A DNA stretch of 64,000 nt from Geosiphon pyriformis uo1 (lineage: Eukaryota > Fungi > Glomeromycota): NCBI GenBank assembly GCA_016748015.1, contig JAAOMT010000664.1, forward strand, positions 997,518 to 1,061,517, given 5' to 3'. Shown piece by piece: positions 1,283 to 52,764 of the stretch. The notes beneath the pieces were generated by a model that was not told the origin of the DNA, did not search any database, and saw nothing but the letters and a program-made list of their open reading frames with translations. The position numbers were made by a program, and so were the translations under genes. Position 1 is the stretch's first letter. Every line of letters starts with the position of its first letter.

Positions 1283-2791
1283 TAATAACTTGAAATATCA
1301 ACCTGAAATCTAACTCGAGTCGTAGTATCAAAAATATCAAGTTTGAATTGGGTCGACTGATACCAGCATGATTCTTTTTCGTTGCAATTATTGTAAATCA
1401 ATAAATCAGGATAAAAATATGAACTAACACTTTTACGATATACTTTTGTTTTTGACTTGTATTATGAGCCATCTTTGGGAGGTCAAGTTTTTCCCAATAC
1501 CCAAATTAAAAATAAAAGCATCAGGCGCATTAAAATATTTTTCAGAATTAGAATTAGAATAAGAATCAGAATCAAAATCAGAATATTTAAACCACAGTGT
1601 GTGGAATAATAGCCTCCCACAATTTTCCCAGATCCAACTATCTTGGCTACTATAACAGTCTTTACGTAATTGGCACGTATATTTCGAAAACTGCTTCCTG
1701 TAAAGCCATAACCACTGCCTCGATATATAGGGTTGAAGGTGTAGAGAGATTTTTAATTCGTTGTAGTCTTTTTATCGATCCATGAAGAAATGATATTGAT
1801 ATGTGGTGAGTTTATGATCTCAGATTTAGCAAAACGGGCTCGAGATGGAAGGATATGAGTTGGTGGTTGAGGTTTAGTCTTAAGATGGTATGCCCAGATT
1901 TCATTCTTGAAGTTCTTTGGTAAAACTTTTTTATATGGTATGACATGGTCAAAATAGTCATCCCCAGAGATGTCACAATATCTTATCAATGGGATGCATT
2001 TGCGAATGGTTATCTCAAGTGCAGCAAAATCTTCTGCGCTCCAACTCACTAACTTCTTTTCGACAAGTCTTGGTGTGTTTCCAATGCCCCATTTGATTAA
2101 AGATTGCCACAATTCAACTTCCTTCATCTTAAGGTTATTTATTTGAAGCAAGAACACAAGAACCGATTCCTCCAAAGAATGAAGGTCATTTGATTTAAAG
2201 ATAAAATGGGGGTTATCCTCAGCCATTCGAGAATAATGTTCCTTCAGTTTTCCAAAGGATTCATAATGAGAAACTGTTTTGATAGTTTTAACACAATTTT
2301 CTTGCAGCCATTTAGATTCCTTTTTAATAAGATGCTCTTGACAATGATTGATTAACTCGAGAAGTTCGAGCTCGTCAGCAGCTATAAGTATTTGCAAGAC
2401 ATCAACCTCCTTTTCTTTATTCAAATCAATCATTCCGGTATACATATATCTAAAAAATAGCATTAAAAATTAAGATATTTAAATTTTTTTATCTTTTTTT
2501 ATATTATATGATTATTAGGAAGAAAATAAATTAACCCCACCCGAGGATAATCTCGAATATTTTTGCTGCAATATTAGGCTTCTTAAAAATCAATATATGT
2601 TCCTTCTTTTTGGCCCATTCATTTGACAATGCTCGTCGAAAATAAGGAGAGCGAGCACGAAGAATAATAGAGTGAGCTTGAAATTTTTTAGGCTCGGCTT
2701 TCTCCCCAGCTTCAATGATCACATTATATTCATCAAAGTGTTGAAATAGCTCAGTAAGATCATGGATAAGAGTTTCGGTAAACTTGGCCAT
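1283..2791 (-). pseudogene. BTB-BACK-TLDc gene, truncated/pseudogenised in the TLDc part
   Basis: Exon 1 2791-2541 (MAKFTETLIHD...FQAHSIILRARSPYF, BTB), GT-AG intron 2540-2450, exon 2 from 2449 (YMYTG...AADELEL). A TAA stop at ~1753 replaces the Tyr of the NYKSPY motif in paralogues. TLDc motifs (IYRGS..GF, KIVGGY, APDAFIFNLG, ESCWY) continue with frameshifts to ~1283. Could still yield a BTB-BACK-only protein. Confidence 0.85.
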
Positions 2792-5243
2792 TGGGAGTTA
2801 ACAGAAAAAGTTAAAAAAACCATAAAAACTTCATTCTTTATAATATTTATATAATTTTAGAAAATTATGGGATACATTATTCCCCGAAATTAATAGCGAT
2901 TGGGTATAATTTAGATATCTGGTCTGTTTTCTTTTATACCATCATAACATTTTAACATAAAAACCCCAGGATTTTATGTTAAAGCGTAAGATATCTATCA
3001 CAGAATCATTTGCAAAACTTATTAGTTGAAATCGGGTAAAATCTTCTTCGGTTTGAGGCATCAACATTTTTGTAAAACATATCTTTCTTCGAAACAAATA
3101 AAAATTTTCCAACTATTAAATATTGTGAAATTAATAATATTGTTTAAATGATATGCACAAAATGGGATGTTTAAAATAAGATAATAGTTTTTGCATGAAA
3201 CAACAAGTTTAGTATTAAATTATTTCATAAATGTCTTAAAATTGAAATATTGTGATAGGTTAAGAATGCACAAACTTGAAGCATTAATCTATTAAAATTT
3301 TCAGGAATATTTGGCCAACTATTTTCAAAAAAAAAATTCAAAATTTGTTTTTTCTGCAAGATTAACATTTACACCATAATAATTGAATAACTTTATATGC
3401 AAAATTTTTTAATTGAAAAGTTTTATATACTAATAAGATTTTAAGTTCTTTCAAAGCAATATTAATTAAAAAAATTGAATCAAGATAGTATTTATAAAAA
3501 AGATTTAATTGTAATCGCAAAGCTACAAATCATAGTCTATAGGTTTAAGTAGCTACGGTACACAAAGAATGACCATTAAAAATTATGCATGCGAAATTTC
3601 AAAAGGGCATGATTTAATAAAACCCTTATTGTTTATATGACTTTTGTTAACCAATTGTGTTTACTTTTGACAGGCATAATCACTATTTCTTAAATATTAG
3701 TCTAACTCATAAACATTCTGTAAATCTAATAAATTTAGTTAAATACTAAAATTTAAACTTGATAATTTTTGAAATTTAATACAAAAAAGTATATTCTATT
3801 AATAGAGAAAATTATATTTTGGTATAATTATTTCTTAATAATTATAATTATTTTAATTAAAATTAATTTTTTAAATCAAAAAAAATAATAATTAACAATT
3901 TTTAAATTAATATTTCACAGATATAATTCTTTTAAAATAACATATTGAGAATATTTTTATATATTTTTGCAAATCATAATAATAACCTGTAATCTTACCA
4001 TTATTTAAATTATTACTAACATGATTTTATACAAGTAATTATTCACTCATGTTAAATAACATCATTTTTATAAAATCTATTTTAACAAATTTGAAATGTT
4101 TTTTTTGTATAATTATTAAATGGTGACAAGTATGATTCAACTACATCTTACAAAATGTGACATCAGAAATTACCTGCATTATATTTCTCAAACAACAGAA
4201 ACCTAAATAACTCAAAAATATGCCCACATTTTCTAACTTCACTATCAAAACACTGATTAATCATGTAGATAATGGTAAAATTCCTAACTAAATCTGCAAT
4301 TTTCAATTATCCTTCTTAAAAATCTCATACAAACTCCTAAATACAAAACTCCTTGCCAAATTGACATCCTGATTCTTTTGAATTGGGGTATCATATTTCT
4401 CAGTTGCCTAAAAACAAGAGTTTATAAGGCAATTTGTTTTCTTGCTTTTATCAGTAAAAATCTCTCCAAACCACCATGATTGAAGAAAACAAGTTTTTAA
4501 GACTATTGGAATTTTTTGATTCTTTTTTTTTTAAAGGAATTGTTTCTTACAAAACCTATTCCTATAACGTTAAAGTTATTGAAGTTTATTTTCAGGTTTA
4601 ATAAATACTAAATCAAAAATTCCATAATCTTCTTTGCGATTGGAGATTAGTCTTTGGAGCGTAAAAAATTATTCATTTTATAATGACACAATTTATAACT
4701 TAAAAACTTAAGTTTTAAAACAAAGTATAAAAAATATTTGAATTTTGGTGGTTACTTACTCAATCCCAAAAATCTTAAAAATCTTGTGCAATCAACTTAT
4801 TATAATAAATCAAGATTTTCTACCTAATGACTTCATGATATAACTTTTAAGAGATTAGGTATTTATAGCCTTAATAATTTAAAAACAAAAAAGAACTTGG
4901 GCAAAAAATTACTTTCAAGTGCGTTAGGATTGAATTCTTTCCAACCAATCATTTTTAGTCATGATCATTCTATTATTAAGCGAAGAATTTTGCTTGAAAT
5001 GATACAAAGATGACATCAGGTTTCTTTATCAAAGTATCATTCAACATTCATAAGGCACTCAATAAATAAAACTTTTGTACAAGATAAAAACGTGATCCCC
5101 CAATTCCATTTTGATCTACTCTAGCAAGAGAACGCAAACCTTTTATCACAAACATCTACCCATTGATTTTCTATCCTTTCTACTCGGCACCTACTACGCA
5201 AATTATTTTCTTTTAAACATTTTTGCAGGACTTTTCAAAATTC

Positions 5244-7959: not shown

Positions 7960-8224
7960 TCATATTAAATAAGGCTTTCTTCTCTTGAACTTCTTTGATG
8001 GTTAAATTGGTTCCATCGGTAATTATGAGAGATAAAAGTATTTTAGGAAGAAGAATTAATGTTCCATCAGAGTCTCTTATATTTAGTTTTGTCTTTTCGT
8101 TAATATTGTTAGTAGTTTTTTCTTTTAATGAATATTTCTCAGGAATGCTAATGCCTAATTCTGCTAGGACATCATATAGGATTTTTAATTCGATCGTAGC
8201 ATCTAAGGCTGCATGATCTAATCA
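7960..8224 (-). pseudogene. Degenerate putative molybdenum-cofactor carrier (MoCo_carrier, SLOG superfamily) gene fragment
   Basis: Minus-strand translation *LDHAALDATIELKILYDVLAELGISIPEKYSLKEKTTNNINEKTKLNIRDSDGTLILLP...DGTNLTIKEV then frameshift to RKPYLI. This matches the family pattern VDRAALD..A.E..IP..Y.L.E...RT..NVRDSDGTLI...GT.LT...KP.L. There is no start codon and the GGQTG motif is destroyed. Confidence 0.7.
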
Positions 8225-11979: not shown

Positions 11980-13397
11980 ATGGAAAACAAAGAAATTAAG
12001 AGAACAACTCGTCCAGAAACACATGATTGCAATGAGTGTGAAAAATGTCAAGACAGTATTAAAAACAATCAAAAGAATTGTGGGTAATATGTGTATGACA
12101 TGCAAGTTCATATTTTTTAAAAAACTTTATAAGAACTTTTCAAGCAGCAATAAAGAAGTTGATGAAATAATTAGGAATCCAATCTNNNNNNNNNNNNNNN
12201 NNNNNNNNNNNNNNNNNNNNNNNNNNNNNNNNNNNNNNNNNNNNNNNNNNNNNNNNNNNNNNNNNNNNNNNNNNNNNNNNNNNNNNNNNNNNNNNNNNNN
12301 NNNNNNNNNNNNNNNNNNNNNAAAGAGCTATGTTTATTAATAACAAAGGTAAATACTTAAAATATTTCTCCACAATGTATGGAATTACGCAAAACGCTAA
12401 AACACTCGAGTATGGAATTGTCATGCCCTTTGCTAAACTTGGAGATATGCGAAAATATTTATCAACAAATTTTTATTCTACGAGTTGGTATGATAAATTA
12501 TTGATCGCGGGTGCAATAGCTTCAGGACTTTTACAAATTCATTCTTCTGGTATGGTTCATCGTGACCTACACTCGGGCAACATTCTACAAATGACTACTT
12601 ATCAGGCAAACATTGGAGACCTCGGATTATGTCAACCAGTAAACCATGAAGCAACAACAACAACAAGAAAAGACATGAAAGAAAAAAAGATATATGGAGT
12701 GATTCCATACATTCCACCAGAAGTTTTAAGAGGAGAAAATTTTACAACAGCTGGTGATATTTATAGTTATGGAATGTTATTATGGGAATTAGCAACAGGA
12801 AAGCCTCCATTTCATAATTTTTCTCATGATCATATTCTTATAATGGCTATTTTAAATGGTCAAAGACCAAAGGTTACTTCCCCCTTATTCCACCTTGCAT
12901 CGCTGAAATAATTGTAAAGTGTTGGGATGCTGATCCTAAGAATCGTCCTACTGCTTAAGAAGTATGGCATAAGTTGTTGAACATGTATATGTGGGCTGTA
13001 AAAGATACAGATGAAGTTTCAATGATAGAAGAGTTTAAAACTGTAAGTCTTCAGTTTAGAGAATCAGATAAACACTTAAAAGAAATGGTAGAAAGTGATG
13101 ACTCAACGACAACAATTCAATCAACAACAACTCGCATTCATCCAGGAGCAGTTTATACAAGTCGTGTTTTAACTTTGCAAATGATTGATTTTTCTAAAGG
13201 TTAGTTTATTTAATTTAGACATAATTAGTTTATTGATTTAATTATTATACAGTATATAAAAATTTATATTAATTTATTTTACTATTCTATTTTAAAAGAA
13301 TTAGTCTATTTACCTAAAGGTAAGAAATTACATGTATTATTAATGAATTTATGCTCTTGTTTTAATACTTATTTATTTTACATTAGATGACTCTTAA
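11980..13397 (+). pseudogene. TKL-type Ser/Thr protein kinase pseudogene (spans an assembly gap)
   Basis: MENKEIKRTTRPETHDCNECEKC start, frameshift at ~12080, N-gap, then HRDLHSGN, DLG, YGVIPYIPPE, DIYSYG. A second frameshift at ~12885 and a TAA at ~12956 follow. A 21-nt mini-exon (13299-13319) and last exon (13387-13397) mirror the intact paralogue. Confidence 0.85.
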
Positions 13398-13634: not shown

Positions 13635-13636
<2 letters not shown>

Positions 13637-13676
<40 letters not shown>

Positions 13677-20712: not shown

Positions 20713-21081
20713 TCAAATATTGGCAATAGTTTTTTAAAAANNNNNNNNNNNNNNNNNNNNNNNNNNNNNNNNNNNNNNNNNNNNNNNNNNNNNNNNNNNN
20801 NNNNNNNNNNNNNNNNNNNNNNNNNNNNNNNNNNNNNNNNNNNNNNNNNNNNNNNNNNNNNNNNNNNNNNNNNNNNNNNNNNNNNNNNNNNNNNNNNNNN
20901 NNNNNNNNNNNNNNNNNNNNNNNNNNNNNNNNNNNNNNNNNNNNNNNNNNNNNNNNNNNNNNNNNNNNNNNNNNNNNNNNNNNNNNNNNNNNNNNNNNNN
21001 NNNNNNNNNNNNNNNNNNNNNNNNNNNNNNNNNNNNNNNNNNNNNNNNNNNNNNATCTTAATTTTTAATGCTAATTTTTAG

Positions 21082-22336
21082 ATATATGTATACCGGAATG
21101 ATTGATTTGAATAAAGAAAAGGGGGTGGATGTCTTGCAAATACTGATAGCTGCTGATGAGCTCGAACTTCTCGAGTTAATCAATTATTGCCAAGAGCATC
21201 TTATTGAAAAGGAATCTAAATGGCTTCAAGAAAATGCTGTTAAAACCATGCAAACAGTTTCTTATCATGAAGCTTTTGGAAAACTGAAGGAACATTATTC
21301 TCGAATGGTTGAGGATAACCCAGATTTTATCTTTAAATCAAATGACTTCCTTTCTTTGGAAGAATCGGTTCTTGTGTTCTTGCTAGAAATAGATGACCTT
21401 GATATGAAGGAAATTGAAGTGTGGAAATCTCTAATCAAATGGGGTATTGGAAACACACCAAGACTTGTCAAAAAGAAGTTAGTGAGCTGGGGTGCAGAAG
21501 ATTTTGCTGCACTTGAGAAAACCATTCACAAATGCATCCCATTGATAAGATATTGTGACATCTCTGGGGATGACTTTTTTGACCATGTTATACCATATAA
21601 AAAAGTTTTACCGAAGAGCTTAAAGAATGAAATCTGGGCATACCATCTTAAGACTATACCTCAACCACCAACGCATATTCTTCCATCCCGAGTTCGTTTC
21701 GCCGAATCTCTGATCATAAAATCACGACATGTTAATATCATCTCTTCATGGATTGACAAAGAGACTGCTACATTGAATTACAAATCTCCCTACACCTTCA
21801 ACCTTATATATCGAGGCAGTCGTGATGGCTTTACAGGAAGAAGTTTTCAAAATAGATGTGCCGATTACGTAAACACCGTTGTTGTAGCCAAGATAGCTGG
21901 ATCTGGGAAAATTGTGGGAGGCTATAATCCCACATACTGGGGAGACTTGGTTTTCCGCAATCAATATTATAATCGTTGTGGATATTATAATAGGGATGAA
22001 TATTATAATGGGGATGAATTTTATTATAATGAGGCTAAAATTCATTTTGATCGTTCTGAGGAATATTTGAGTGCGTCTGATGCTTTTATTTTTAATTTGG
22101 GTGATGGGAAAAATTCTAACCTCATAAAGGTTGCTCATAGTACAAGTGAAAATCAAATAGCGTATAATCCCAATTATGGACCATATTTTTATAGTGATTT
22201 ATTCTTTGGCAATAGTTCTAACGAGAAAGAATCATGCTGGTATAAGCCGAGCTCCTACAAACCTCAAATTTTTGATAATGAATTTAGTTTTCACCTTGAT
22301 GAGTTGGAAGTATTTCAGGTAATAAAAAATATATAA
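21082..22336 (+). CDS. BTB-BACK-TLDc protein, exon 2 (exon 1 presumably in the N-gap)
   Basis: Acceptor TTTTTAG|ATATATG, then an uninterrupted ORF with AADELEL, LIKWGI, LIYRGSRDGF, IVGGYNP, GPYF, ELEVFQV. Confidence 0.9.
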
Positions 22337-27498: not shown

Positions 27499-29039
27499 AT
27501 GTCTAAATTTACTGAAACTCTTATCCATGACTTTAGCGAGCTATTGCAAAATTCGGATGAATATAATCTGATTATTGAAGCTGGAGAAAAACCCGAGCTC
27601 AAAAAGTTTCAAGCTCACTCTATTATTCTTCGTGCTCGCTCTCCTTATTTTCGACGAGCCTTGTCAAATGACTGGGCGAAAAAGAAGGAACATATGTTGA
27701 TTTTTAAGAAACCTAACATTGCAGCAAAAATATTTGAGATTATACTCGGGTAGAGCTATTTTATTGTTTTCTATAAATAATAGAAAAAAAACTAAATATC
27801 TTAAAATTTCTTATATTACTAATTTATAGATATATGTATACTGGCGTGGTTAATTTGAATAAAGAAAAAGGGGAGGATGTCCTGCAACTACTAATAGCTG
27901 CTGATGAGCTTGAACTTCTTGAGTTAATCAATCATGGCCAAGAGCATCTCATTAAAAATGAATCTAAATGGCTGCAAGAAAATGCTGTTAAAACCATGCA
28001 AACTATTTCTCGTCATGAACCTTTTGGAAAATTAAAGGAGCATTATTCCCAAATGGTTAAAAATAACCCACAGTTTATCTTTAAATCAAATGATTTCCTT
28101 TCGTTGGAAGAATCGGTCCTTGTATCCTTGCTTCAAAGGGAAGACCTTGAAATAGAGGAAATTGAATTGTGGCAATCTTTAATCAAATGGGGCATTGGAA
28201 ACACATCAAAAATTACTGAAAAGAAGTTAATGAGCTGGGGTGCAGAAGATTTCGCTGCCCTTGAGAAAACCATTCACAAATGCATTCCATTGATAAGATA
28301 TTATGACATCTCTGGGGATGACTATTTTGACCATATCGTACCATATAAAAAAGTTTTACCGAAGAACTTAAAAAAGGAAATTTGGGCATACCATCTTAAG
28401 ACTAAACCTCAACCACCAACTCATGTCCTTCCACCTCGAGCCCGTTTTGCTGAATCTGAGATCATAAACTCACGACAAATCAATATCATTTCTTCATGGA
28501 TCGATAAAAAGACTACAAAAAACTACAAATCTCCCTACACTTTCAAACTCCTCTATCGAGGCAGTCGTGATGGCTTCACAGTAAGCAGTTTTCGAAATCT
28601 ATGTTCCAATCAGTTTAAAACCGTTGTCGTAGCCAAGATAACCGGACCCGGAAATATTGTGGGAGGCTATAATCCCACATCTTGGGGTGGCAACCAACCA
28701 AATACAATTAATTATGACTATAGTTATAATTATAATTATAATTATAATTATAATCGTGAGCAATACTTGAGCGCACCCGAAGCATTTATTTTTAATTTTT
28801 GTGATGGGAAGAACCCTACCCTCGCAAAAGTTGCTCGTAGTACAAGTGGAAATCAAATAGGGTATTGTCAGAGTTATGGACCATATTTTTATAGTGATTT
28901 ATTCTTTGGCGATAATTGCAACACACAAAAATCATGCTGGCATCAGTTAACCTATTTCCAACCTGAAATTTTTGATACCACAGGTCGAGCTGCGTTTCAG
29001 GTTGATGAATTGGAAGTATTTCAGGTTATTGAAAAGTGA
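27499..29039 (+). CDS. BTB-BACK-TLDc protein
   Basis: Exon 1 27499-27749, GT-AG intron 27750-27829, exon 2 27830-29039. All motifs are intact; there is a (TATAAT)n YN repeat in the TLDc loop. Confidence 0.92.
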
Positions 29040-30920: not shown

Positions 30921-32372
30921 TCACTTTTTGACTCCTTTTTCAATAACCTCAAATACTTCCAATTCATCAACCTGAAACGTAACCCGACATGTTATATCGA
31001 AAATTTCAGGTTGGATGTCAGCCAACTTATGCCAGTATGACTCTTGTGTATTGCAATTATCGCCAAAGAATAAATCATTATAAAAATATGGTCCATAACT
31101 CTAACAATATGCTATTTCATTTCCACTTGTACTACGAGTAATCTTTGCGAGGGCAGGATCCTTCCCGTCACCTAAATTAAAAATAAATGCTTCTGGCGCA
31201 CTCAGATATTGCTGATTATAGCCACAGTAGATGCTACCACATGATATGGGATTATAGCATCACACAATATTTCCGGGTCCGGTTATCTTGGCTACGACAA
31301 CGGTTTTAACCTGATTGGCACATAGATTTCGAAAACTGCTTACTGTAAAGCCATCAGGACTGCCTCGATAGAGGAGTTTGAAAGTGTAGGGAGATTTGTA
31401 GTTTTTTGTAGTCTTTTTATCGATCCATGAAGAAATGATATTGATATGTCGTGAGTTTATGATCTCAGATTCAGCAAAGCGGGCTCGAGGTGGAAGGATA
31501 TGAGTTGGTTGTTGAGGTTTAGTCTTAAAATGATATGCCCAGATTTCCTTCTTTAAGTTCTTCGGTAAAACTTTTTTATATCATGTATACCGGAGTGGTT
31601 AATTTGAATAAAGAAAAGGGGGCAAATGTATTGCAAATACTTATAGCTGCTGATGAGCTCGAACTTCTTGAGTTAATCAAGCATGGTCAAGAGCATATCA
31701 TTAAAAATGAATCTAAAGGCTGCAAGAAAATGCTGTTAAAACTATGGAAACAGTTTCTTGCCATGAACCTTTTGGAAAACTAAATGGGTATTACTTCCAA
31801 ATGGTTGGCAATATTATCTTTAACTCAAATGATTTCCTTTCTTTGGAAGAATCGATCCTTGCATCCTTGCTTCAGATGGAAGACCTTGAAATTGAGGAAG
31901 TTGAAGTGTGGCAATCTTTAATAAAATGGGGTATTGGAAACACATCAAAAATAATTGAAAAGGCGTTAGTAAACTGGGATGCAGAAGATTTTGCTGCCCT
32001 TGAGAAAACCATTCAAAAATGCATCCCTTTGATTAGATATTATGTCATCTCTGGGGATGACTATTTTGACCATATCATACTATCTTAAAATTAGTCTAAT
32101 AATTTAAAATAAGGTAACCTTACCTGATAATAATCTCAAATATTTTGCTGTAATATTTGGCTTCTTAAAAACTAACATATGATCCTTTTTTTTAGCCCAG
32201 TCATTTGACAATGCTCGTTGAAAATAAGGAGAACGAGCACGAATAATAGTAGGGGAGTTTGAAACTTTTTAAGTTCGGCTTTTTCGCCAGCTTCAATAGA
32301 CAGGTTATATTCATCGGAATGTTGCAATAGCTCGCTGAAGTCATGGATAAGAGTTTCGATAAATTTAGCCAT
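30921..32372 (-). pseudogene. BTB-BACK-TLDc pseudogene broken by an internal ~500-bp inversion
   Basis: Exon 1 is on minus (32372-32123, frameshifted). The 5' half of exon 2 is on the PLUS strand (31583-32080). The 3' half with TLDc is back on minus (31580-30921) and has an in-frame TAG. Confidence 0.88.
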
Positions 32373-35500: not shown

Positions 35501-35560
35501 TTACTCAATCATCCAGGAGCAGCTTATACAAGTGGTTTTTTAAGTTTGCAAATGATTGAT
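32545..35560 (+). repeat. Segmental duplication unit, copy A (copy B at ~53235-56200)
   Basis: Near-identical non-coding sequence, TLDc fragment and kinase pseudogene in the same order and orientation. Confidence 0.9.
33145..33384 (+). pseudogene. Orphan fragment of a BTB-BACK-TLDc gene (linker plus start of TLDc)
   Basis: HLKIKPQSPTHLLP..., NYKSSYILNLIY*GSYDSFTGNSFR...KTVVVAK. Confidence 0.8.
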
Positions 35561-39225: not shown

Positions 39226-40751
39226 TTATAATAAAATAACTGTTGAAATGACTTGAAATACTTCCAATTCATCAACCTGAAACATAATTCGAGTTTCGGT
39301 ATCAAAAATTTCAGGTTTGAAGTAGGTTAACTGATGCCAGCATGAGTTTTGGGTGTTACAATTATCGCCAAAGAATAAATCCATATAAAAATATGGTCCA
39401 TAACTCTGACGATATCCTATTTGATTTCCACTTGTGCTACGAGCAACCTTTGCGAGGGCAGGATTCTTCCCGTCACCTAAATTAAAAATAAATGCTTCTG
39501 GCGCATTCAAACATTGCTCAAGATGACTATGACGAAAGTGGTTGCCACCCCAAGATGTGGGATTATAGCCTCCGATAATATTTCCAATACCGGTTATCTT
39601 AGCTACGACAACGGTTTTAGACTGATTACCACATAGATTTCGAAAACTGTTTGCTGTAAAGCCATCACGACTGCCTCGATATATAAGGTTTAAGGTGTAG
39701 GGAGTTTTGTAATTCATTGTAGCAGCTTTTTTATCAATCCATGAAGAGATGATATTGACATGTCGTGATTTTAGGATTTGAGATTCGGTAAAACGAGCTC
39801 TGGGTGGAAGAGTATCAAGCGGTAGTTGAGGTATAGACATAAGATGGTATGCCCAGATTTCCTTCCTCACGCTCTTTGGTATAACCTTTTTATATGGTAT
39901 GAAATAGTTAAAATAGTCATCCCCAGAGATGTCATAATATCTGATCAACGGGATGCATTTGTGAATGGTTTTCTCAAGGGCAGCAAAATCTTCTGCATCC
40001 CAGTTTACTAACTCCTTTTCGATTATTTTTGTTGTGTTTCCAATACCCCATTTGATTAAAGATCGCCACACTTCAACTTCCTCCATTTCAAGGTCTTCCA
40101 TCTGAAGCAAGGATACAAGGACCGATTCTTCCAAAGAAAGGAAATCATTTGAGTTAAAGATAATATCTGGGTTACTGCCAACCATTTGGAAGTAATGCTC
40201 CTTTAGTTTTTCAAAAGGTTCATGGCGGAAAACTATTCCCATAGTTTTAACAGCATTTTCTTGCAGCCATTTAGATTCATTTTTAATGAGATGCTCTTGA
40301 CCATGATTGATTAACTCAAGAAGTTCGAGCTCATCAGCAGCTATAAGTATTTGTAATACATCCGTCCCCTTTTCTGTATTCAAATTAACCACTCCGGTAT
40401 ACATATATCTACAAATGGTATTATAGATTAAAGATATTTAGTTTTTATGTATATTTCTTTATATCATATAATTATTAGGAAGAAAATAAAGTAATCGAAC
40501 CTAAGAATGATTTCAAATATTTTTGCTGTAATATTAGGCTTCTTAAAAATCAACATTTGATCCTTTTTTTCAGCCCAGTCATTTGACAATGCTCGCCGAA
40601 AATAAGGACAACGAGCACGAAGAATATTAGAGTGAGCTTGAAACTTTATAAGGTCAGCTTCTTCGCCAGCTTCAATAATCAGATTATATTCATCGGAATG
40701 TTGCAATAGCTCGCTAAAGTCATGGATAAGGGTTTTGGTAAAATTTGCCAT
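39226..40751 (-). CDS. BTB-BACK-TLDc protein
   Basis: Exon 1 40751-40501, GT-AG intron 40500-40409, exon 2 40408-39226; intact. Confidence 0.92.
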
Positions 40752-42269: not shown

Positions 42270-44298
42270 TAGATATCATTGCGATTGGATATCATAATTT
42301 TTTAAATTGTAATGCTGTATTTTAAATAACTTATTATATAAAATGGATATTTTTATTAATTTATTAAAAAGGGTATTCTTTTTCTATTTTGCATTAGTTT
42401 TTTTCTTTCATATTCCCTTTTCCTTTGAGTTTATTATTGATTAAATATGTTTAATTATGAATAATTTAAATAGCTATAGTGCACAATGACGCCAAACAAA
42501 GTTTTCCATTGTTTCATTGTCTTTTTGCATAACGAGTAGTTAGATAACAAAAGAATTCATCCTCATTTACCACGTTAATATGTTAAATTCAAACTTTTTT
42601 TTTTTTTCTGTCAAACCTAAATTTAATAGTGCATTCATCATTAATTGAGAATATTAAAATCACCTTTGATACAAAATATTAAATTTTTTAAATAAAATAA
42701 AAACATGTAATACATTTCAATTAAATATTTTGGAGTAATTTTATACTATAATAGATTTACTTTATAAAAGCTTTTTAAATTATTTAAGTTAATTATACTT
42801 CTAATGCTAAAATTATATGGCTTAAATTAATTGCGAACAAGCAGTGTTTTTATGTTAAACATTGTTTAAATAATTATTTTACTCAATTAAATTTAATATT
42901 TGGATAATTCAAAATGAATATGTTAATTAGTTTGAAATATTACAAATTCTTGTCTTTATATATATTTTTAATTAATTTGGCAGAAAGAAGGTAAATGATA
43001 AGGGTTATTTTATTGGCTTTTTGCTCTATCAAAAACTTAAAATTCCAAGTTTTTCTTTAACATATTAATTATGTTAAATAAAATGTACTTGCTAAAATTA
43101 CCTTTTTTTATTAATTTCCTAAACTTTATCTTTTTTCTTGTAATTTTTATTTTCGAATCATTTTTAGCTTGGAGTTATCAGCCTATCTTTTTTTTGGTTT
43201 CTATTTAAGGCAGAAATGAAACTAAACCTCAGATTAAAGCTTTGCCTGCTCAATTTGACCCTGTTTTTATGGAAATTTACATAATATAAAAAAGTCGTGA
43301 TAAATTTTTTTATAGTTTATTAGTGCTCTAAGCTTATTGCATAGAATTCTGTTCATGGATTTTTTACTTTCTTTAAAGGTTCCTAAATGAGCACCCTATC
43401 TTTTTATTATTTGAAACGAGTAGTTTCTATTTTAAACTTTGACTATTAGATTTGTAAATGTGTCAAAATAGATTCAATATAAATAGATAGTGTATATTAT
43501 AAAAATCTTATCAGTTTGGAAAATTATATTGTCCAATCTTTTAAAATTAGCCATGAATTTTTGATTTGCATAAGTTATCTATTCAATCCGTCCAATTAAT
43601 GTATATGTAATTGGTTATCATTTCGATCCAAAATGCATTCTTTTTCAAAAAATTTCAAATTTTACTAAAAAATGGGCAATGAAAAAAATCTTTCAATTTC
43701 AAAAAAAAAAGACAAAAAAAACTTGGCCAACAAAAATATAAATATTGTTAAAGCTTGTTGATGCTGTTTATTATTAGTTAAAATTATTTTACCAATATAT
43801 AATTTTAACAAGATTATCAAAGAGTGTTCAAAAACAATGTATTATTAAAGGCTATGTTATTCAAATTTTAAAGTTTGCAGTGCCAATATGCAATGTGCTT
43901 TGATTAAAAAAAATTAAAATAATATGCAAAAGATTTTTTAAATAATTGATCGTATAATTAGACAAATCAATTTTTTTCAATTTCAAAAGTTGGAATAAAA
44001 TCAAATATTATTGGCTTAAGAAGGTTTAAGATAAGAAATATTTAAAACATATGACTACAAATAAAGTAAAAGTACTGCGAGTTCGAAATCAATTTAACCC
44101 ACAGAATATTAAAATTAGAAGAAGAGTTATCTCAGAAAATTCCAAAAGGCTTTTAATGCTAGCTGATGTAATTTTCTGATATAAATACATATAAAAATTA
44201 TCCGTTAGAAAAGCTTATCAGATTAAAATGGTTAATTAACAAAAAGACATAGTAAAAAGGAGAATTATCGTTTTTTAAAAACTCTTATTATAATAAAA

Positions 44299-45822
44299 TC
44301 ACTTTTCAATAACCTGAAATACTTCCAATTCATCAACCTGAAACGCAGCTTGACCTGTGGTATCAAAAATTTCAGGTTGGAAATAGGTTAACTGATGCCA
44401 GCATGACTCTTGGGTGTTGCAATTATCGCCAAAGAATAAATCATTATAAAAATATGGTCCATAACTCCGAGCATATGCTATTTGATTTCCATTTGTACTA
44501 CGAGCAACCTTTGCGAGGGCAGGATTCTTCCCGTCACCTAAATTAAAAATAAATGCTTCTGGCGCACCTAAATATCTAATATTATTATAATTATAATTAT
44601 ATTCATAATGACTTGAGTATTGGTTGCCACCCCAAGATGTGGGATTATAGCCTCCAACAATAATTCCAGATCCGGTTATCTTAGCTGCGACAACGGTTTT
44701 AGACTGATTACCACATAGATTTCGAAAACTGTTTACTGTAAAGCCATCACGACTGCCTCGATATATAAGGTTTAAGGTGTAGGGAGATTTGTAATGCGTT
44801 GTAGCAATCTTTTTATCAATCCATGAAGAAATGATATTAACATGCCGTGATTTTATGATCAGAGATTGGTCAAAACGGGCTCGGGATGGAAGGATATGAG
44901 TTGGTAGTTGGGGTGTAGTCTTTAGATGGTGTGCCCAGATTTCCTTCTTGAAGTTTTTTGGTAAAACTTTTTTATATGGTATGACATGATCAAAATAGTC
45001 ATCCCCAGAGATGTCATAATATCTGATCAACGGGATGCATTTGTGAATGGTTTTCTCAAGTGCAGCAAAATCTTCTGCACTCCAGCTCACTAACTTCTTT
45101 TCAACAAGTCTTGGTGTGTTTCTAATGCCCCATTTGATTAAAGATTGCCACACTTCAATTTCCTTCATATTAAGATCATCTTTTTGAAGCAAGGAAATAA
45201 GGATCGACTCTTTCAAAGAAAGGAAATCATTTGACTTAAAGATAAAATCTGGGTTATCCTCAACCATTTGGGAATAGTGCTCCTTTAGTTTTCCAAAAGG
45301 TTCATGGCGAGAAACTATTTCCATAGTTTTAACAGCATTTTCTTGCAGCCATTTAGATTCCTTTTCAATAAGATAGTCTTGACAATGATCGATTAACTCG
45401 AGAAGTTCGAACTCATCAGCAGCTATCAGTATTTGCAAGACGGTCATCCCCTTTTTTTTATTCAAATTAACCACTCCGGTATACATATATCTAAAAATTA
45501 ATAATATAAATAGATTTAAAATATTTAGTTTTTTTTCTATTATTTCTAGAAAAATAATAAAATAGCTCTACCCGAGAATAATCTCAAATATTTTTGCTGC
45601 AATGCTAGGTTTCTTAAAAATCAACATATGTTCCTTCTTTTTCACCCAGTCATTTGACAAGGCTCGTCGAAAATAAGGAGAGCGAGCACGAAGAATAATA
45701 GAGTGAGCTTGAAACTTTTTAAGCTCGGGTTTTTCGCCAGCTTCAATAATCAGATTATATTCATCAGAGTGTTCCAATAGCTCGATAAGGTCATGTATAA
45801 GAGTTTCGGTAAATTTAGCCAT
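44299..45822 (-). CDS. BTB-BACK-TLDc protein
   Basis: Exon 1 45822-45572, intron 45571-45491, exon 2 45490-44299; intact. Confidence 0.92.
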
Positions 45823-45865
45823 TAAAAGAATAGAGAAAGGTTGAAAGGTGAAAATTTGCAACTTG

Positions 45866-45904
45866 ATCGATCGATCGATCGATCAATTTATCGATCAATT
45901 TATC
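45866..45904. repeat. (GATC)5 plus GATCAATTTATC repeat just upstream of a BTB gene
   Basis: Read directly. Related (ATTG/CAAT)n tracts lie upstream of paralogues at ~27420, ~32455 and ~49212. Confidence 0.75.
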
Positions 45905-47625
45905 TAAGTGATTGGATATCATACTTTTATTAATTCAATAACGAGATTAAATTTATTAGTTTCATAAGTGATATACGGATCTTAATAATTTTTTATTATA
46001 TTAAAATGAATAGTTCTATTAATTTATTGAAAAGGGTATCCTCTTTATACTTCCTTTTCTCCCTCTTTTCCCTTTGAATTGGTTTTATTCCCTTGCCCTT
46101 GAATTATTATTGATTAAACATATTTAACTATGAATCATTAAGTTGCTATAGTACACAAAGACGCCAAACAAGTTTTCCATTGGGTCCTTATCTTTTTGCA
46201 TAATAAAAGAATTCGCCCATTCTTAATATGTTAAATTCAAACTGTTTTTTTCTGTCAAACCTAAATTTGACAGTGAGTGTTCATCATCATTAAAATTCAT
46301 AAATAAAATAAAGATATTTGATAGCATTTCAAATTATATATTTTATACTATAATAAATTTACTTTGTAAAAGCCTTTTAAAGTTCTTTAAGATAAATATT
46401 CTTCTAATGCTAAAATTCTATGGCTTAAATTAATTGTGAACAAGCAGTATTTAAATTTTTTTATTTTAACATGGTTTAAATAATTATTTTACCCATTATA
46501 ATTTGATATTTAGATAATTCAAAATGAATATTTTAATTAGTTTAAAATATTGTAAATTCTTGTTTTTATCTATATTTTAATTAATTTGGCAGAGAGAAGG
46601 TAAACGATAAGCGCTATTTTATTTCCTTTTTGCTTTATCAAAAAACTTAAAATTCCATACAAAGGCAAAAGTATTTGTACTTTATATTTTTATTAATTAT
46701 ATGTAGAATAAAAAGTTTGGTTTCGAATCATTTTTAGCTTTGAGTTACCAGCCTATCTTTTCTTTTGGTTTTTATTTAAGGCAGAAATGAAACTAGATCT
46801 CAGAGTAAAGCTTTGCCTGCTTAATTTTGCCCGGTTTTTATGGAAATTTAACATAATATGAAAAAGCAGTGATAAATTTTTTTATAGCTTATTAATGCAT
46901 TAAGCTTATTGCATAGATTTCTGTTCATAGATTTTTTACTTTCTTTAAAGGGTTTTAAATGAGCACCCTATCTTTTTATAATTTGAAACGAATAGTTTTT
47001 ATTTTAAACTGTGACTATTAAATTTATAAATGTGTCAAATTGGATTCTATGAGTTTGTTCAAAAAAAAACAAAAAAAACTTGGCCAACAAAAACATAAAT
47101 ATTGTTAAAGCTTGTTGATGCTGTTTATTATTAGTTAAAATTATTTTAGCAATATATAATTTTTAACAAGATTATCAAAAAGTGTTCAAAAACAATGTAT
47201 TATTAAAGGCTATGTTATTCAAATTTTAAAGTTTGCAGTGCCAATATGCAATGTGCTTTGATTAAAAAATATTTAAAAAATAATAAAAGATAATTGATAG
47301 TATAATTAGGCAAATCAATTTTTTCAATATCAAAAGTTGGAATAAAATCAAATATTATTGGCTTAAGAAGGTTTAGGATAAGAAATATTTAAAACATATG
47401 ACTACAAATAAAGTAAAAATACTGCGAGTTCGAAATCAATTTAACGCACAGAATATTAAAATTAGAAGAAGAGTTATCTCAAAAAATTCCAAAAGGCTTT
47501 TTCTGATATATATACATATAAAAATTATCCGTTAGAAAAGCTTATCAGATTAAAATGGTTAATTAACAAAAAGACATAGTAAAAGGGAGAATTATCGTTT
47601 TTTAAAAACTCTTATTATAATAAAA

Positions 47626-49144
47626 TCACTTTTCAATAACCTGAAATACTTCCAATTCATCAACCTGAAACGCAGCTCGACCTGTGGTAACAAAAATTTC
47701 AGGTTGAAAATAAATTAAGTGATGCCAACATGATTTTTGGGTGTTGCAATTATCGCCAAAGAATAAATCCATATAAAAATATGGTCCATAACTCCGAGCA
47801 TATGCTATTTGATTTCTACTTGTACTATGAGCAACCTTTGCGAGGGCAGGATTCTTCCCGTCACCTAAATTAAAAAAAAATGCTTCTGGCGCACTCAAAT
47901 ATTGCTCATAATCATAATATTGACTTGAGTATTGGTTGCCACCCCAAGATGTGGGATTATAGCCTCCAACAATAATTCCAGATCCGGTTATCTTAGCTGC
48001 GACAACGGTTTTAGACTGATTACCACATAGATTTCGAAAACTGTTTGCTGTAAAGCCATCACGACTGCCTCGATATATAAGGTTTAAGGTGTAGGGAGAT
48101 TTGTAATGCGTTGTAGCAATCTTTTTATTAATCCATGAAGAAATGATATTGACATGTCGTGATTTTAGGATTTGAGATTCGGTAAAACGAGCTCTGGGTG
48201 GAAGAGTATCAAGCGGTAGTTGAGGTATAGACATAAGATGGTATGCCCAGATTTCCTTCCTCACACTCTTTGGTATAACTTTTTTATATGGTATGAAATA
48301 GTTAAAATAGTCATCCCCAGAGATGTCATAATATCTGATCAACGGGATGCATTTGTGAATGGTTTTCTCAAGTGCAGCAAAATCTTCTGCACTCCAGCTC
48401 ACTAACTTCTTTCCAACAAGTCTTGGTGTGTTTCTAATGCCCCATTTGATTAAAGATTGCCACACTTCAACTTCCTCCATTTCAAGGTCTTCCATCTGAA
48501 GCAAGGATACAAGGACCGATTCTTCCAATGAAAGGAAATCATTTGAGTTAAAGATAATATCTGGGTTACTGCCAACCATTTGGAAGTAATTCTCCTTTAG
48601 TTTTCCAAAAGGTTCATGACGAGAAACAGTTTGCATGGTTTTAACAGCATTTTCTTGCAGCCATTTAGATTCATTTTTAATGAGATGCTCTTGACCATGA
48701 TTGGTTAACTCAAGAAGTTCAAGTTCATCAGCAGCTATAAGTATTTGCAATACATTCGCCCCCTTTTCTGTATTCAAATTGACCGCTCCGGTATATATAT
48801 ACCTTAAAATTGGTATTATAAATTTAAGTGAGTTAGTTTTTTCATCTTTCTTAATATAATATAATTATTAGGAAGAAAATAAAGTAACCCTACCTGAGAA
48901 GGATTTCATAAATTTTTGCTGTAATATTAGGCTTCTTAAAAACTAACATATTATTCTTTTTTTTAGCCCAGTTATTTGACAATGCTCGTCGAAAATAAGA
49001 AGAGCGAGCACGAAGAATAGTGGAGTGAACTTGAAATTGTTGAAGCTCGGCTTTTTCCCCAGCTTCAATAATCAGATTATATTCATCCGAGTTTTGCAAT
49101 AGCTCGCTAAACTCATAGATAAGAGCTTCAGTAAGTTTAGACAT
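47626..49144 (-). CDS. BTB-BACK-TLDc protein (mosaic paralogue)
   Basis: Exon 1 49144-48894, intron 48893-48803, exon 2 48802-47626 (RYIYTGAV...); intact. The 3' flank 47070-47626 is near-identical to 43710-44299. Confidence 0.92.
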
Positions 49145-51201
49145 AGAGCGTGAATATACAAAGTTAAAAAGAATAGTAGCTAAACAAGAAAGTTATAGGT
49201 GAGTACTAATGATCAATTAATCAATCAACTTACCTGCGAGATTGCAGTTTTGATATATCTTTAGCTTCAACTTATTAACGCAAAAATTAGATATTTCTAA
49301 TTCAAAAATACATGGTATCATATGAATAATCTTAACAAAAATAATAAAGCTTGCTTTTGGGCATGTAATAAAAAAAAAGTGATATTTTATCAAAGAGCTC
49401 ATTTGCTCTAAATGGTTGTGTTTTAGAAATGAGAATTAACAAATTTGATTTTGGTAAGGCATACCAATTCAAAAAAAAATTTAAAAGTTTTGAAAAGTAA
49501 AAAAACAGACAGTTTAATATAACAAATAAACAAAACTAAATAATATTAAATAGTATATTTTAAGTTCGTATAATATAGAATATTGTATAAAATAAAAATT
49601 TACTTATTTAAACAAAATTTAAACATATATATTGTAAATTATATTAACTTAATCAAGATAATATTTTAACATATAAATTTTTATTTAAGAATTAATACAA
49701 CAAATAAGACAACCATTAATTTTTATATATATTATAAAAACTTTACACAGTTTATTGTTAGTTTTTTAAAAAAATTGCATAATAGAAATAATTTTATTAT
49801 TAAATATATCAAGTATAATAAAAAAAATATTTAGATTATATATTAGTTTTTAGCGCTAAGTTTAGAAAAGAGTTTATATTACAAAATAAATCTAAAATTT
49901 AAAAAACTTAATATTTTGTATATAAATATCAATCCAAATTTTAATATAAGTAATTATACAGCTTTGGACAACAAAATTTAAAGAAATACTATGTTGAATT
50001 GCTTAAATTTTCAAAAAATATTAAAATAATAGAAATTTATAATAATGTATTACAAGTAGTATTATCAAATATGTTTTTTTTTCTTTTCAAAACATGTACA
50101 ATGGCTGTTATAATTAATTCAAAGATTCAATTTATATCCAAGGAATATTTTGAGCTTTGTAAAAATAAAATAAAGTTTTAAAGACATTAAGTATATGTGT
50201 GTTGAAAACAGTTTTTTTAGAATAACCAGTGATTTTACTAATAATTTAGTTTGATTAATGTTTTGCCAAATAAGAGCTTGTATAAATATTAAGCATTAAA
50301 TTTATAATAATGAAAATTTACAATGTATTGTCATTTTCCGATATATATGTAATTAGTTTTTTATATCAATTTTTATTGTCAATTTGTACGAATCTAATTA
50401 AACAAATATTTATTATTACAAAATCAAATAACATTGAAATAATAATTTTAAACCTCAACAATTAGTACAAATTTTTTAAATATGTAACAGTTTAAAATTT
50501 TTCAAAATTTCTCAATTGTGATTTTTAAATATTACATTAATAAATATATTATTGTATAGACAAAAATTGTATATATTATATTTTTAAATGACTTTAATAT
50601 TTGTGTAAATCTGCCAAATGAATCAAATTTAAATTTTTTCAATATAATTGTATTCAATAGAAAAAACTCATCAATCAAATAATTCTTACGTTTTGAATTT
50701 TTAGCTAATTTTGCTTTTTTTCTCATGTTGTTATAACATAATAGATTTAAACTCTTTTATTCGCATTTTAATAATCAAAAAAATATTTGAATAAATTGGT
50801 TTTTTAATGACCTTGAAAATATTTTAAATTTTGTTACCAAAGTATAAAAATTTATTGTAGCAATCAATAAAAACTTCAAAAGCTTACTTATTTATTCATT
50901 TTGTGAAATGCATAAAGCAACTTCTTGGGTAATGTGTAGAAATTCTGCAAAGTTATCTGCGTTTTTTTTATAGGCTAAAATAATCTTTTTAAAATTGAAA
51001 AGTTAAATAGGAAACCAATTTTTTGAACCTAAAATGTTAGCATTAAAAGAATAATTATCTCAAAGAATTTAAAAAGGCTTTTAAGTGCTAGCTGTTAGTT
51101 AGAATAGATGAATACAAGTAATGCCATATAAAATTTTGTATTAGAAAAGCCTATCAGATTAGAATGTTTAGATGTAATAAAAAGGAGAAAAAATCATATT
51201 T

Positions 51202-52764
51202 TTAAGAACTCTCGTCACAAAAAATAAATTTTCCAATAACCTGAAATACTTCCAATTCATCAACCTGAAACATGGCTCGAGTCTCAGCATCGAGAATTTT
51301 CGGTTGGAAGTATTCAGAATTATACCAACATGATTTTTGTGTGTTGCAATTATTGCCAAAGAATAAATCATTATAAAAATATGGTCCATGATTCTGACCA
51401 TATGCTATATGTTTTGTACCTGTATTACGAGCAACCTTTGCAGGGGTAGAATACTTCCCGTCACCCAAATTAAAAATAAAAGCGTCTGGGGCACTCAAAT
51501 ATTGCTCATGAACATTGGAGCCGAAAGAGCTAAACCCAACATTAGGTCTTGCAGGCTGATCACCCCAGGATGTGGGATTATAGCCTCCCACAATATTTCC
51601 AAAGCCAGTTATCTTAGCTACGACAACGGTGTTAACCTGATTAGCACATAGATCTCGAAAACTTTTTACCGTAAAGCTATTAATGCTGCCTCGATAGATA
51701 AGTTTAAAGTTGTAGGGAGATTTATAATTGTTTGTAGCAGTCTTTTTTTCAATCCATGATGAAATTATATTAATATGTTGTGAATTTATGATTTGAGATT
51801 CGGTAAAACGAACTCGGGGTGGAAGAATATCAAGCGGTAGTTGACGTATAGACTTAAGATGGTGTGCCCAAATTTCCTTCCTCACGCTCTTTGGTATAAT
51901 TTTTTTATATGGGATTACATAATTAAAATAGTCGTCCCCAGAGATGTCGTAATATCTAATCAATGGAATACATTTGCGAATAGTTTTCTGAAGGGCAGCG
52001 AACTTTTCTGCATCCCAGCTCACTAACTCCTGTTCGATAAGTCTTGGTGTGTTTCCAATGCCCCATTTAATTAAAGATTGCCACACTTCAATTTCCTCCA
52101 TGTTAAGATCATCTTTTTGAAGCAAGGAAACAAGGACCGATTCTTCCAAAGAAAGGAAATCATTTGATTTAAAGATAAACTGTGGGTTATTGCCAACCAT
52201 TTGGAAGTAATGCTCCTTCAGTTTTCCAAAAGGTTCATGGCGAGATACTATTTGGATGGTTTTAACAGCACTTTCTTGCAGCCATTTAGATTCATTTGTA
52301 ATAAGATGCTCTTGAACATGATTGATTAACTCAAGAAGTTCGAGCTCATCAGCAGCTATAAGTATTTGCAATACATCCGCCCCCTTTTCTGTATTCAAAT
52401 TAACCACTCCGGTATACATATATCTACAAATGGTATTACAGATTAAAGATATTTAGTTTTTTTCATCTTTCTTTGTATCATACAATTATTAGAAGAAAGT
52501 AAAGTAACCCTACCCGAGAATGATCTCAAATATTTTTGCTGTAATATTAGGCTTCTTAAAAACTAACATATGATCCTTTTTTTTAGCCCAGTCATTTGAC
52601 AATACTCGTTGAAAATAAGGAGAACGAGCACGAAGAATATTAGAGTGAGCCTGAAACTTTTTAAGCTCGGCTTCTTCACCGGCTTCAATAATCAGATTAT
52701 ATTCATCGGAATGTTGCAATAGCTTGCTAAAGTCATGGATAAGAGATTCGGTAAGATTAGCCAT
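51202..52764 (-). CDS. BTB-BACK-TLDc protein
   Basis: Exon 1 52764-52514, intron 52513-52424, exon 2 52423-51202; intact. The RGSRDGF motif has diverged to RGSINSF. Confidence 0.92.

Follow-up and report, generated by a model that had tools for sequence, protein, structure and literature searches.

A tandem BTB-BACK-TLDc gene array in Geosiphon pyriformis with a TLDc hairpin loop of variable length and a candidate role in ligand binding

The window analysed, a 64-kb stretch of the Geosiphon pyriformis genome, contains eight BTB-BACK-TLDc paralogues (genes G9A89_017554-017567), whose frameworks share 69-82% identity between copies. Of the eight, five are intact and two are pseudogenes; the remaining one has lost its 5′ exon from view in an assembly gap. 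The initial annotation had described eight paralogues with a similar framework and differing loops, and all of them were located, within one base, by ORF analysis, tblastn and three-frame translation. Copy C (G9A89_017559; 100% identity to protein P0001, 486 aa) spans 27499..29039 on the plus strand, with exon 1 at ~27499-27750 and exon 2 at ~27831-29039. Its loop of 25 residues (P0001 371-395) lies at 28689..28763 (+), followed at 28860..28886 (+) by a second variable loop, L2 (P0001 ~428-436, before GPYFY), a homologue of the second loop found under selection in the main family. The other intact copies are all on the minus strand: copy D (G9A89_017563, 39226..40751; loop 39514-39546, 11 residues); copy E (G9A89_017565, 44299..45822; loop 44575-44628, containing (TATAAT)3 at 44584-44601), with an 81-nt GT..AG intron at 45491-45571; copy F (G9A89_017566, 47626..49144; loop 47902-47940, 13 residues); and copy G (G9A89_017567, 51202..52764; loop 51502-51561, 20 residues). 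Copy B is represented by exon 2, which encodes the end of the BTB domain, then BACK and TLDc, in an open frame at 21068..22336 (+), with a loop of 40 residues at 21944..22063 (+); an assembly gap at 20741..21054, close upstream of the ORF at 21068, conceals its exon 1 and intron, and paralogue L009 has ~806 nt between the aligned flanks corresponding to this gap. A second assembly gap, 12186-12321, falls inside an unrelated kinase gene; the loops are untouched by either gap.

Copy A (1297..2791, minus strand; exon 1 2791-2537, exon 2 2448-1297), annotated as the truncated G9A89_017554 and recognized as a pseudogene by tblastn and three-frame translation (P0013), carries an in-frame stop downstream of the BACK-TLDc linker, and frameshifts flank its loop (1538..1590, minus strand) on both sides. 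The second pseudogene is scrambled (30936..32372, minus strand; exon 1 32372-32122, TLDc part 31580-30936; tblastn and three-frame translation): the stretch in the middle, aa 86-254, lies in reverse orientation at 31583-32079 on the plus strand, and the copy contains three stops, with the loop at 31210-31236. Two pseudogenes among eight copies would be expected if the array were mostly decaying or selfishly amplified DNA that spread with repeats, with few functional genes in it and the variable loop an early sign of decay. A TLDc fragment is indeed carried in a dispersed repeat, ~94-97% identical between two places, and about half of the TLDc sites of the array clade fall in the omega = 1 class. 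However, six reading frames, 383-422 codons long, have stayed open in spite of a background of 8.6% stops per codon in intergenic DNA, and the omega of the framework is 0.3-0.6. Moreover, copy E is transcribed and spliced. Decay of the array is accordingly held to be very improbable.

The three-domain identity given to these proteins at the outset was borne out by both Pfam and fold matches. TLDc, BACK and BTB were detected in the array proteins, the TLDc domain (PF07534) scoring 39-49 bits in the six intact proteins, with a Pfam curated cut-off of 24.5; BACK was also above the Pfam cut-off, while exon 2 gives a partial BTB match, this domain being split by the intron. In profile searches, A3 matched NCOA7, Skywalker, mEAK-7 and OXR2 at E values of 6e-5 to 1e-3. 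The AlphaFold2 models are confident outside the loop (pLDDT 89.8 and 89.7, the latter for the TLDc domain model). Through its BTB-BACK half, the full-length model resembles the KBTBD2-Cul3, KLHL11-Cul3, KLHL3, SPOP(-Cul3) and A55 structures, and the best 16 PDB matches of the TLDc domain model are all TLDc structures, with a target TM-score that reaches 0.76 for chains consisting of the TLDc domain alone and falls for multi-domain ones such as mEAK-7 and Rtc5p.

The BTB-BACK half is a constant scaffold of the Cullin-3-docking type, and presumably docks Cullin-3 in these proteins. The proposal that these proteins are Cullin-3 adaptors holds as far as BTB is followed by BACK and the fold matches include Cul3 complexes; as regards the phi-x-E docking motif, it does not, since P0001 has W59-A60-K61 where KBTBD2 has L-S-E. 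Of 83 relatives from Glomeromycota, 64 have Trp at the phi position; at the Glu position, 28 have Glu, 24 Lys and 14 Arg. The array clade has retained the hydrophobic residue and replaced the conserved Glu with Lys. In KLHL3, the E85A substitution abolishes Cul3 binding (PMC3616122).

The segment that varies, L1, is a beta-hairpin loop in the TLDc domain and follows GGYNPxxW directly. Among 11 aligned close paralogues the loop is the sole strongly gapped region, with seven different lengths of 15-47 residues, anchors included, as had been claimed of a loop differing in length from copy to copy. The closest pair shows 85-100% identity in framework DNA (60-nt windows, mostly ≥93%) and 50-59% in loop DNA. 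The loops were also considered as introns, which was ruled out by the absence of GT..AG ends and by the small size of several loops, just 33-39 nt. Tandem repeats with three different units, which the initial annotation does not mention, are present inside four of the eight loops, the other four being devoid of them: copy A has a period-6 repeat (1542-1584, 7.2 copies; Ser/Asp repeats in the shifted frame), copy B a period-18 repeat (21963-22028, 3.7 copies), copy C a period-6 repeat of the (TATAAT)n type (28709-28754, 7.7 copies; TRF) and copy E the (TATAAT)3 mentioned above. Mutation alone can therefore generate the length variation. The 182 tandem-repeat rows in the window indicate that slippage is common in the Geosiphon genome.

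These repeats could be explained by a permissive low-complexity insert in a surface hairpin tolerant of insertions: in a genome of 26% G+C, replication slippage would seed short in-frame repeats in the loop and extend them, and selection would purge only stops, frameshifts and sticky hydrophobic versions, so that the lengthened loops would do nothing specific and their diversity would be a mutational by-product. Several observations are in line with this explanation. In the loop columns that can be aligned within the array, pS (0.54) is as saturated as pN (0.50); disorder is predicted for the lengthened loops, with an AlphaFold2 pLDDT below 55 in copy C; the short loop is stable, being 87% conserved between L010 and L012; and Diversispora and Rhizophagus acquired Tyr/Asn-rich expansions independently at this site, as would be anticipated if the loop is permissive and the genome AT-rich. 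Asn-/Tyr-rich low-complexity inserts occur in protein surface loops of other organisms with AT-rich genomes, such as Plasmodium and Dictyostelium; like the Geosiphon loops, they are disordered and consist of AT-rich codon repeats that grow by slippage in the loops of conserved domains. Unlike them, the Geosiphon insert occupies a site which, in relatives, is under positive selection and contacts the ligand, and its composition excludes Lys and Ile, residues that neutral AT-rich sequence would favour. Indeed, the composition of the loops is far from neutral: Ile, Leu, Phe, Val and Met make up 13% of their residues versus 43% expected (p 5e-21), and no stops are found. Furthermore, a linker of 25 residues in the same proteins, with an omega of ~1, holds its length in 10 of the 11 close paralogues, and (TATAAT)3 has no other occurrence in the 64 kb, so that it is not a common background microsatellite. 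We consider a permissive insert of this kind rather unlikely.

The wider family provides the context in which L1 can be evaluated. The Geosiphon genome contains at least 104 family matches, in agreement with the expansion that had been assumed, and this number, together with the two pseudogenes among the eight array copies, indicates a lineage-specific tandem expansion with copy gain and loss. The close clade of the array is confined to Geosiphon, its nearest outside relative being 43-45% identical. About 40 of the 61 Geosiphon paralogues sampled genome-wide have a fixed 10-residue hairpin at L1, and an expanded L1 was found, among these 61, only in the clade of the array.

Site models (M2a versus M1a), whose tests can be inflated by recombination, gave for the TLDc domain of 22 fixed-loop paralogues of the main family an LRT of 107.9 (p 4e-24), with 3% of sites at an omega of 6.2; in an 81-codon local window analysed on its own tree the LRT was still 42.7. 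Three of the six selected TLDc sites are inside the hairpin (hypergeometric p 0.0023). As the LRT for the BTB-BACK region of the same 22 genes was 0.0, positive selection in the main family is confined to the putative target-binding domain. Diversifying selection in the wider family is thus aimed chiefly at the homologous fixed hairpin, which, like the mapping of this hairpin to a known ligand-contact site (see below), argues against the permissive insert. In the array clade, the TLDc partition before the loop gave a marginal LRT of 8.2 (p 0.016), the one after the loop showed no significant positive selection in site models (LRT 2.7), a result in line with the permissive insert, and BTB-BACK gave 4.6. 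The best-supported sites of this clade are P0001 residue 314 (posterior 0.99) and the loop-adjacent residue 368 (0.82); residues 430-431, in L2, have posteriors of 0.75-0.79 in a partition whose own test is not significant. Since the array loops are not alignable, selection on the lengthened loops is not demonstrable, and the signal of the main family concerns the fixed hairpin; positive selection thus stands for the homologous hairpin of the main family, while the evidence beside the loop in the array itself is weak.

The position of the selected residues can be compared with mEAK-7, a TLDc protein that binds the V-ATPase and whose match to the family is weak with profile A5 (E 0.15-0.25) and stronger with A3 (3e-4) and by fold (1e-5). 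In the alignment, the mEAK-7 hairpin is also 10 residues long, its contacts with V-ATPase subunit A, Pro316 and Gln317, fall at the hairpin tip (loop positions 4 and 5), and a further contact, Thr354, aligns inside L2. Since the selected residues are at the tip and in L2, and mEAK-7, in its solved complex with the V-ATPase, contacts its partner through the same loops, L1 is most likely part of a ligand-contact surface, where the L1 of each paralogue would help to set its binding. The description of L1 as a variable binding loop is therefore a reasonable reading, since the homologous hairpin is selected in the main family and maps to the contact site of a solved TLDc complex.

All the TLDc complexes solved to date are with the V-ATPase (PMC9263379; PMC13570293). 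It could thus be that the TLDc domain of Geosiphon still binds the V-ATPase, as all characterised TLDc proteins do, and that loop variation alters affinity or blocks binding, with no new targets; the family would then tune or ubiquitinate the proton pump in each compartment, for example at the membrane around the cyanobacterial symbiont. The alignment of L1 and L2 with the residues of mEAK-7 contacting subunit A is in favour of such adaptors. However, with one conserved partner, more than 100 paralogues would not be expected to show strong diversifying selection on their contact loops, and the known docking mode would probably be lost with insertions of up to ~36 residues at the contacting tip; this explanation is regarded as quite improbable. 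The V-ATPase-binding TLDc proteins (mEAK-7, NCOA7, OXR1/Oxr1p, TBC1D24/Skywalker and Rtc5p) share fold and Pfam family with the Geosiphon proteins, and the two loops by which mEAK-7 contacts subunit A correspond to the variable loops of the latter. Yet they are single- or few-copy and conserved, none having a BTB domain, whereas in Geosiphon more than 100 copies appear to have diversifying contact loops.

The best explanation, which we hold with modest confidence, is an array in which a ligand-contacting L1, lengthened by slippage, is mounted on a scaffold of the Cullin-3 type. In the tandem array copies are gained, lost and recombined; in-frame slippage of short repeats would have lengthened the hairpin to 14-46 residues (from Trp to the xAFIF anchor), and selection would keep the longer loops open, hydrophilic and Tyr/Asn-rich. 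As L1 of the main family sits where related proteins grip their partner, it probably determines what each copy binds; for the array proteins, ligand binding by L1 and any role of the lengthened loops are extrapolated from this homology. Diversity would arise in the germ line, not somatically, through duplication, slippage, point changes and exchange of TLDc cassettes between copies. Indeed, AU tests rejected shared trees over three partitions (p ~0.03 down to 1e-73), indicating that the genes are mosaic.

A strictly CDR-like receptor, diversified somatically or by mutagenesis, was also considered and rejected. DNA contigs of the source sample showed neither insertions nor deletions in the loops of copy E and copy F, and in Rhizophagus irregularis isolates orthologous long loops are identical except for one 3-residue in-frame indel; thus nothing resembling rapid or somatic diversification was seen. 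With antibody CDRs the loops have in common a variable length and a richness in Tyr, Ser, Gly, Asn and Asp on a constant beta framework, but the fold is unrelated, and the Geosiphon loops are germ-line encoded, one per gene, without somatic or targeted diversification. The loop anchor also gave a chance sequence match to the CDR1 region of a lambda light chain, which is not significant (E 0.48). In a bolder reading, which we deem unlikely, Glomeromycota would have turned the V-ATPase-gripping TLDc surface into a germ-line variable recognition site; fused to a Cullin-3 docking module and present in more than a hundred copies, this site would amount to an innate, immune-like repertoire by which foreign proteins, as they change, are marked for degradation, the array hairpin being a CDR-like long Tyr-rich loop of free length. 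Its targets may include proteins of cyanobacterial or bacterial endosymbionts, viruses, and effectors attacking the proton pump; the label "immune-like" is speculation.

Nematode and plant MATH-BTB and F-box proteins, substrate adaptors of Cul3 and SCF ligases, reportedly evolve adaptively. They resemble the Geosiphon family in lineage-specific tandem expansion, in the fusion of a Cullin-docking module to a variable target-binding domain, in positive selection restricted to the binding domain and in a copy turnover that leaves pseudogenes. They differ in that the variable domain of Geosiphon is TLDc, not MATH or FTH, its variation is centred on one hairpin whose length is changed by repeat slippage, and the array clade has another residue in place of the Glu in the Cul3 motif. 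In grasses, the MATH-BTB family is expanded (PMC4091423).

Arbuscular mycorrhizal fungi and their relatives have hundreds of BTB genes; their expansion in Glomeromycota has been described and its function called unknown (PMC9453076; bioRxiv 10.1101/2021.03.30.436303), and our literature search found no published TLDc-BTB link for these fungi. The present finding supplies a testable idea with the variable residues named, namely that the TLDc end of many such proteins may be a variable target-binding module; it offers loops for swapping in binding assays and a reason to ask about the role of the family in endosymbiont control. If true, this would be the first instance of a TLDc domain serving diversified recognition instead of conserved V-ATPase regulation. 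Bombyx Bmmp and Drosophila CG7102 are developmental BTB-BACK-TLDc genes that affect wing size; unlike the Geosiphon genes they are single-copy, with loop variation or expansion not reported, while sharing with them the same three-domain architecture and a similar length (481 aa) (bioRxiv 10.1101/2021.07.26.453796).

The Geosiphon pyriformis genome (128 Mb, about 26% G+C) carries in this window eight BTB-BACK-TLDc copies, located by tblastn with the annotated 486-residue protein G9A89_017559 as query; this protein, hereafter P0001, is the product of copy C and is 100% identical to the ORF at 27834-29036, the surrounding genes being G9A89_017553 to 017569. Copy C (27499-29039, forward strand) and, on the reverse strand, copies D (39226-40751), E (44299-45822), F (47626-49144) and G (51202-52764) are complete in two exons. 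In copy B (21068-22336, forward) exon 2 is open and exon 1 lies within a gap at 20741-21054; L009, its closest paralogue, carries about 806 nt between the same alignable flanks, indicating that the gap is longer than written. Copy A (1297-2791, reverse) has an in-frame stop and a frameshift on either side of the loop. The eighth copy, a pseudogene at 30936-32372, has three stops; its middle third (aa 86-254) is reversed with respect to exon 1 and the TLDc part, the result of a local inversion within the gene. A second gap, at 12186-12321 inside an unrelated kinase gene, probably hides more than its 136 written letters; the loops are free of both gaps.

The six open frames share 69-73% framework identity with copy B and differ in the segment from GGYNPxxW to YLSAP, which is 11 to 40 residues long. 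Close paralogues from other parts of the genome were added to give an alignment of 11 sequences, each at least 64% identical to copy C; strong gapping is confined to the loop, which takes 7 lengths when measured with its anchors. Thus, the initial annotation, which had described a shared framework with a loop differing between copies, is borne out on this point. The variation is real and not a general trait of unconstrained segments, since the BACK-TLDc linker (P0001 residues 275-297, window ~28401-28469), which has an omega of about 1.1-1.35 and changes by point substitution, keeps a length of 25 residues in 10 of the 11 sequences.

As to how the loops arose, an unspliced in-frame intron was ruled out, as the loops have no GT..AG ends and can be as short as 33 nt. 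Nor are the loops of the closest paralogues related by a compensated frameshift, since reading them in the other frames yields stops or Ile-rich strings and their DNA is barely alignable. Tandem Repeats Finder detected repeats within four of the eight loops, built on three different units: period 6 at 1542-1584 and 28709-28754, period 18 at 21963-22028, and (TATAAT)3 at 44584-44601. The last is not a common background microsatellite, (TATAAT)n of at least three copies being found in two loops only within the 64 kb. Sister paralogues agree over the first three to six residues of the loop and diverge in its middle and end; the loops therefore evolve by descent, through slippage, indels and point changes, rather than being replaced outright. 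Between L007 and L009, the closest pair, framework DNA is 85-100% identical in 60-nt windows (mostly at least 93%), the 5′ flank 96.5% and the 3′ flank 70-90%, while loop DNA reaches 50-59%, with many gaps.

Selection filters the loops, if only to keep them soluble and their frame open. Compared with the open AT-rich DNA of the window, Ile, Leu, Phe, Val and Met jointly account for 13% of loop cores against an expected 43% (p 5e-21), Lys is fourfold depleted, and Tyr, Gln, Glu, Gly and Asp exceed expectation two- to fourfold; stops amount to 8.6% per codon in intergenic DNA and are absent from the loops.

In the wider family, about 40 of the 61 Geosiphon paralogues have at this site a fixed 10-residue hairpin of pattern HSRxxYLxGK, and the lengthened form is confined to the window clade (the array and its close paralogues) and its nearest kin. 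In other Glomeromycota the loop is as a rule short, 6-8 residues by the count applied to these species, and independent expansions occur, some of them, in Diversispora and Rhizophagus irregularis, Tyr/Asn-rich. One 26-residue version is kept across species of Rhizophagus and Glomus (P0027, P0030, P0034, P0038, P0055 and P0064), indicating that a long loop at the same site can be retained by selection. The long loops of R. irregularis differ between isolates by no more than one 3-residue indel, and are therefore not hypermutable.

Because the fixed-length hairpin can be aligned free of gaps, codon site models were applied to 22 fixed-loop paralogues. For the 180-codon TLDc region the LRT was 107.9 (p 4e-24), with an omega of 6.2 at 3% of sites; six sites had a posterior above 0.8, and three of them are hairpin positions 3, 5 and 6, a placement (three of six sites within 10 of 180 codons) with a chance probability of 0.0023. 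An 81-codon window around the hairpin, analyzed on its own tree, gave an LRT of 42.7 and two further selected sites in the second variable loop, L2, just before GPxFG. For BTB-BACK in these 22 genes the LRT was 0.0, a control which shows that recombining paralogues do not generally produce a signal like that of TLDc as an artefact. Over the whole hairpin, dN/dS in this main family is 0.66, because four of the ten positions are conserved.

Pfam detected TLDc and BACK above threshold; of BTB only the C-terminal half was matched, as an intron splits the domain. The full-length AlphaFold2 model (pLDDT 89.8) is confident except at residues 371-394, which correspond to the loop. Its BTB-BACK half resembles KBTBD2, KLHL11, KLHL3, SPOP and A55, all Cul3 adaptors, and the best 16 PDB matches of a TLDc-only model (pLDDT 89.7) are exclusively TLDc domains. 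The BTB-BACK-TLDc architecture is already known from insects, in Bmmp and CG7102 (bioRxiv 10.1101/2021.07.26.453796). Matching the TLDc part to PDB sequences required profiles, single sequences being insufficient: of two single-sequence searches, one gave nothing beyond a chance hit on an antibody light chain (E 0.48), and the other had no hits. When a family profile is aligned to mEAK-7, conserved anchors flank a hairpin likewise of 10 residues; the match to mEAK-7 has an E of 3e-4 with profile A3 and of about 1e-5 by fold. In the mEAK-7/V-ATPase complex, Pro316, Gln317 and Thr354 contact subunit A at its residues 553-559 (PMC9263379). Pro316 and Gln317 align with positions 4 and 5 of the hairpin and Thr354 falls in L2; thus, the two selected Geosiphon loops correspond to two neighbouring loops that touch the ligand in a solved TLDc complex.

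On the adaptor side, the L-S-E of the KBTBD2 phi-x-E motif is aligned to W-A-K of P0001. Of 83 relatives, 64 have Trp at the hydrophobic position; at the last position 28 have Glu, 24 Lys and 14 Arg. In KLHL3, Cul3 binding is abolished by E85A (PMC3616122). Docking of the window clade to Cul3 is plausible from the modelled fold, with one defining residue missing.

Within the window clade, pairwise Nei-Gojobori windows and our own M1a/M2a code, which sums over ancestral states, were used. Pairwise omega is 0.3-0.6 in all framework regions, no window is clearly above 1, and in the alignable loop columns pN (0.50) and pS (0.54) are both saturated. For 11 paralogues, the TLDc part before the loop gave an LRT of 8.2 (p 0.016), the top sites being P0001 residues 314 and 368, the latter adjoining the loop; the part after the loop (LRT 2.7) and BTB-BACK (LRT 4.6) were non-significant. 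L2 sites 430-431 of P0001 had the next-highest posteriors. Positive selection within this clade is thus weakly indicated.

The copies have swapped scaffolds and TLDc cassettes, so gene conversion may account for some of the framework similarity. Between paralogues L003 and L010, synonymous divergence rises from 0.10 in BTB-BACK to 1.3 in the C-terminal TLDc part, and in AU tests the trees of BTB-BACK and of the TLDc parts before and after the loop mutually reject one another (p from about 0.03 down to 1e-73).

Taken over the array and paralogues sampled from across the genome, these tests support the initial proposal that a putative ubiquitin-ligase adaptor bears a variable binding loop, on the strength of homology and of the selection seen in the wider family. 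In the array itself, slippage mutation explains how the lengthened loops vary; a function for them is something that we infer, and an immune-like system directed at foreign proteins is a speculative hypothesis.

Three sequencing runs, X1-X3, were compared with 44000-49999 in the form of contigs. Run X2 is restricted to exonic parts of copies E and F, and one of its joints skips 45491-45571, with GT..AG ends on the minus strand, which is the exact intron of copy E; this copy is therefore transcribed and spliced, on the evidence of a single contig, one side of which is 22 letters long. Although listed as 'DNA?', X2 behaves like RNA in its exon-only coverage and GT..AG joint. Across the three runs a spliced joint was found for copy E only; the X2 contigs over copy F are mismatched and may come from paralogues. 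The X1 DNA contigs have no indels at the two loops that they cover, those of copies E and F.

Genes for tyrosine-kinase-like protein kinases, another family expanded in these fungi, are interspersed with the array at 12023-12911 (+), 14385-15877 (-) and 35212-35559 (+), and a class 3 lipase gene in two adjoining frames (19831-20555, +) lies just 5′ of the gap and copy B. A dispersed repeat of at least 800 nt is present at 32936-33700 and 53560-54360 (+), with about 94-97% mutual identity; both copies hold a dead BTB-BACK-TLDc fragment, comprising the linker and the first part of TLDc with a stop, which suggests that the fragment was captured by a mobile element.
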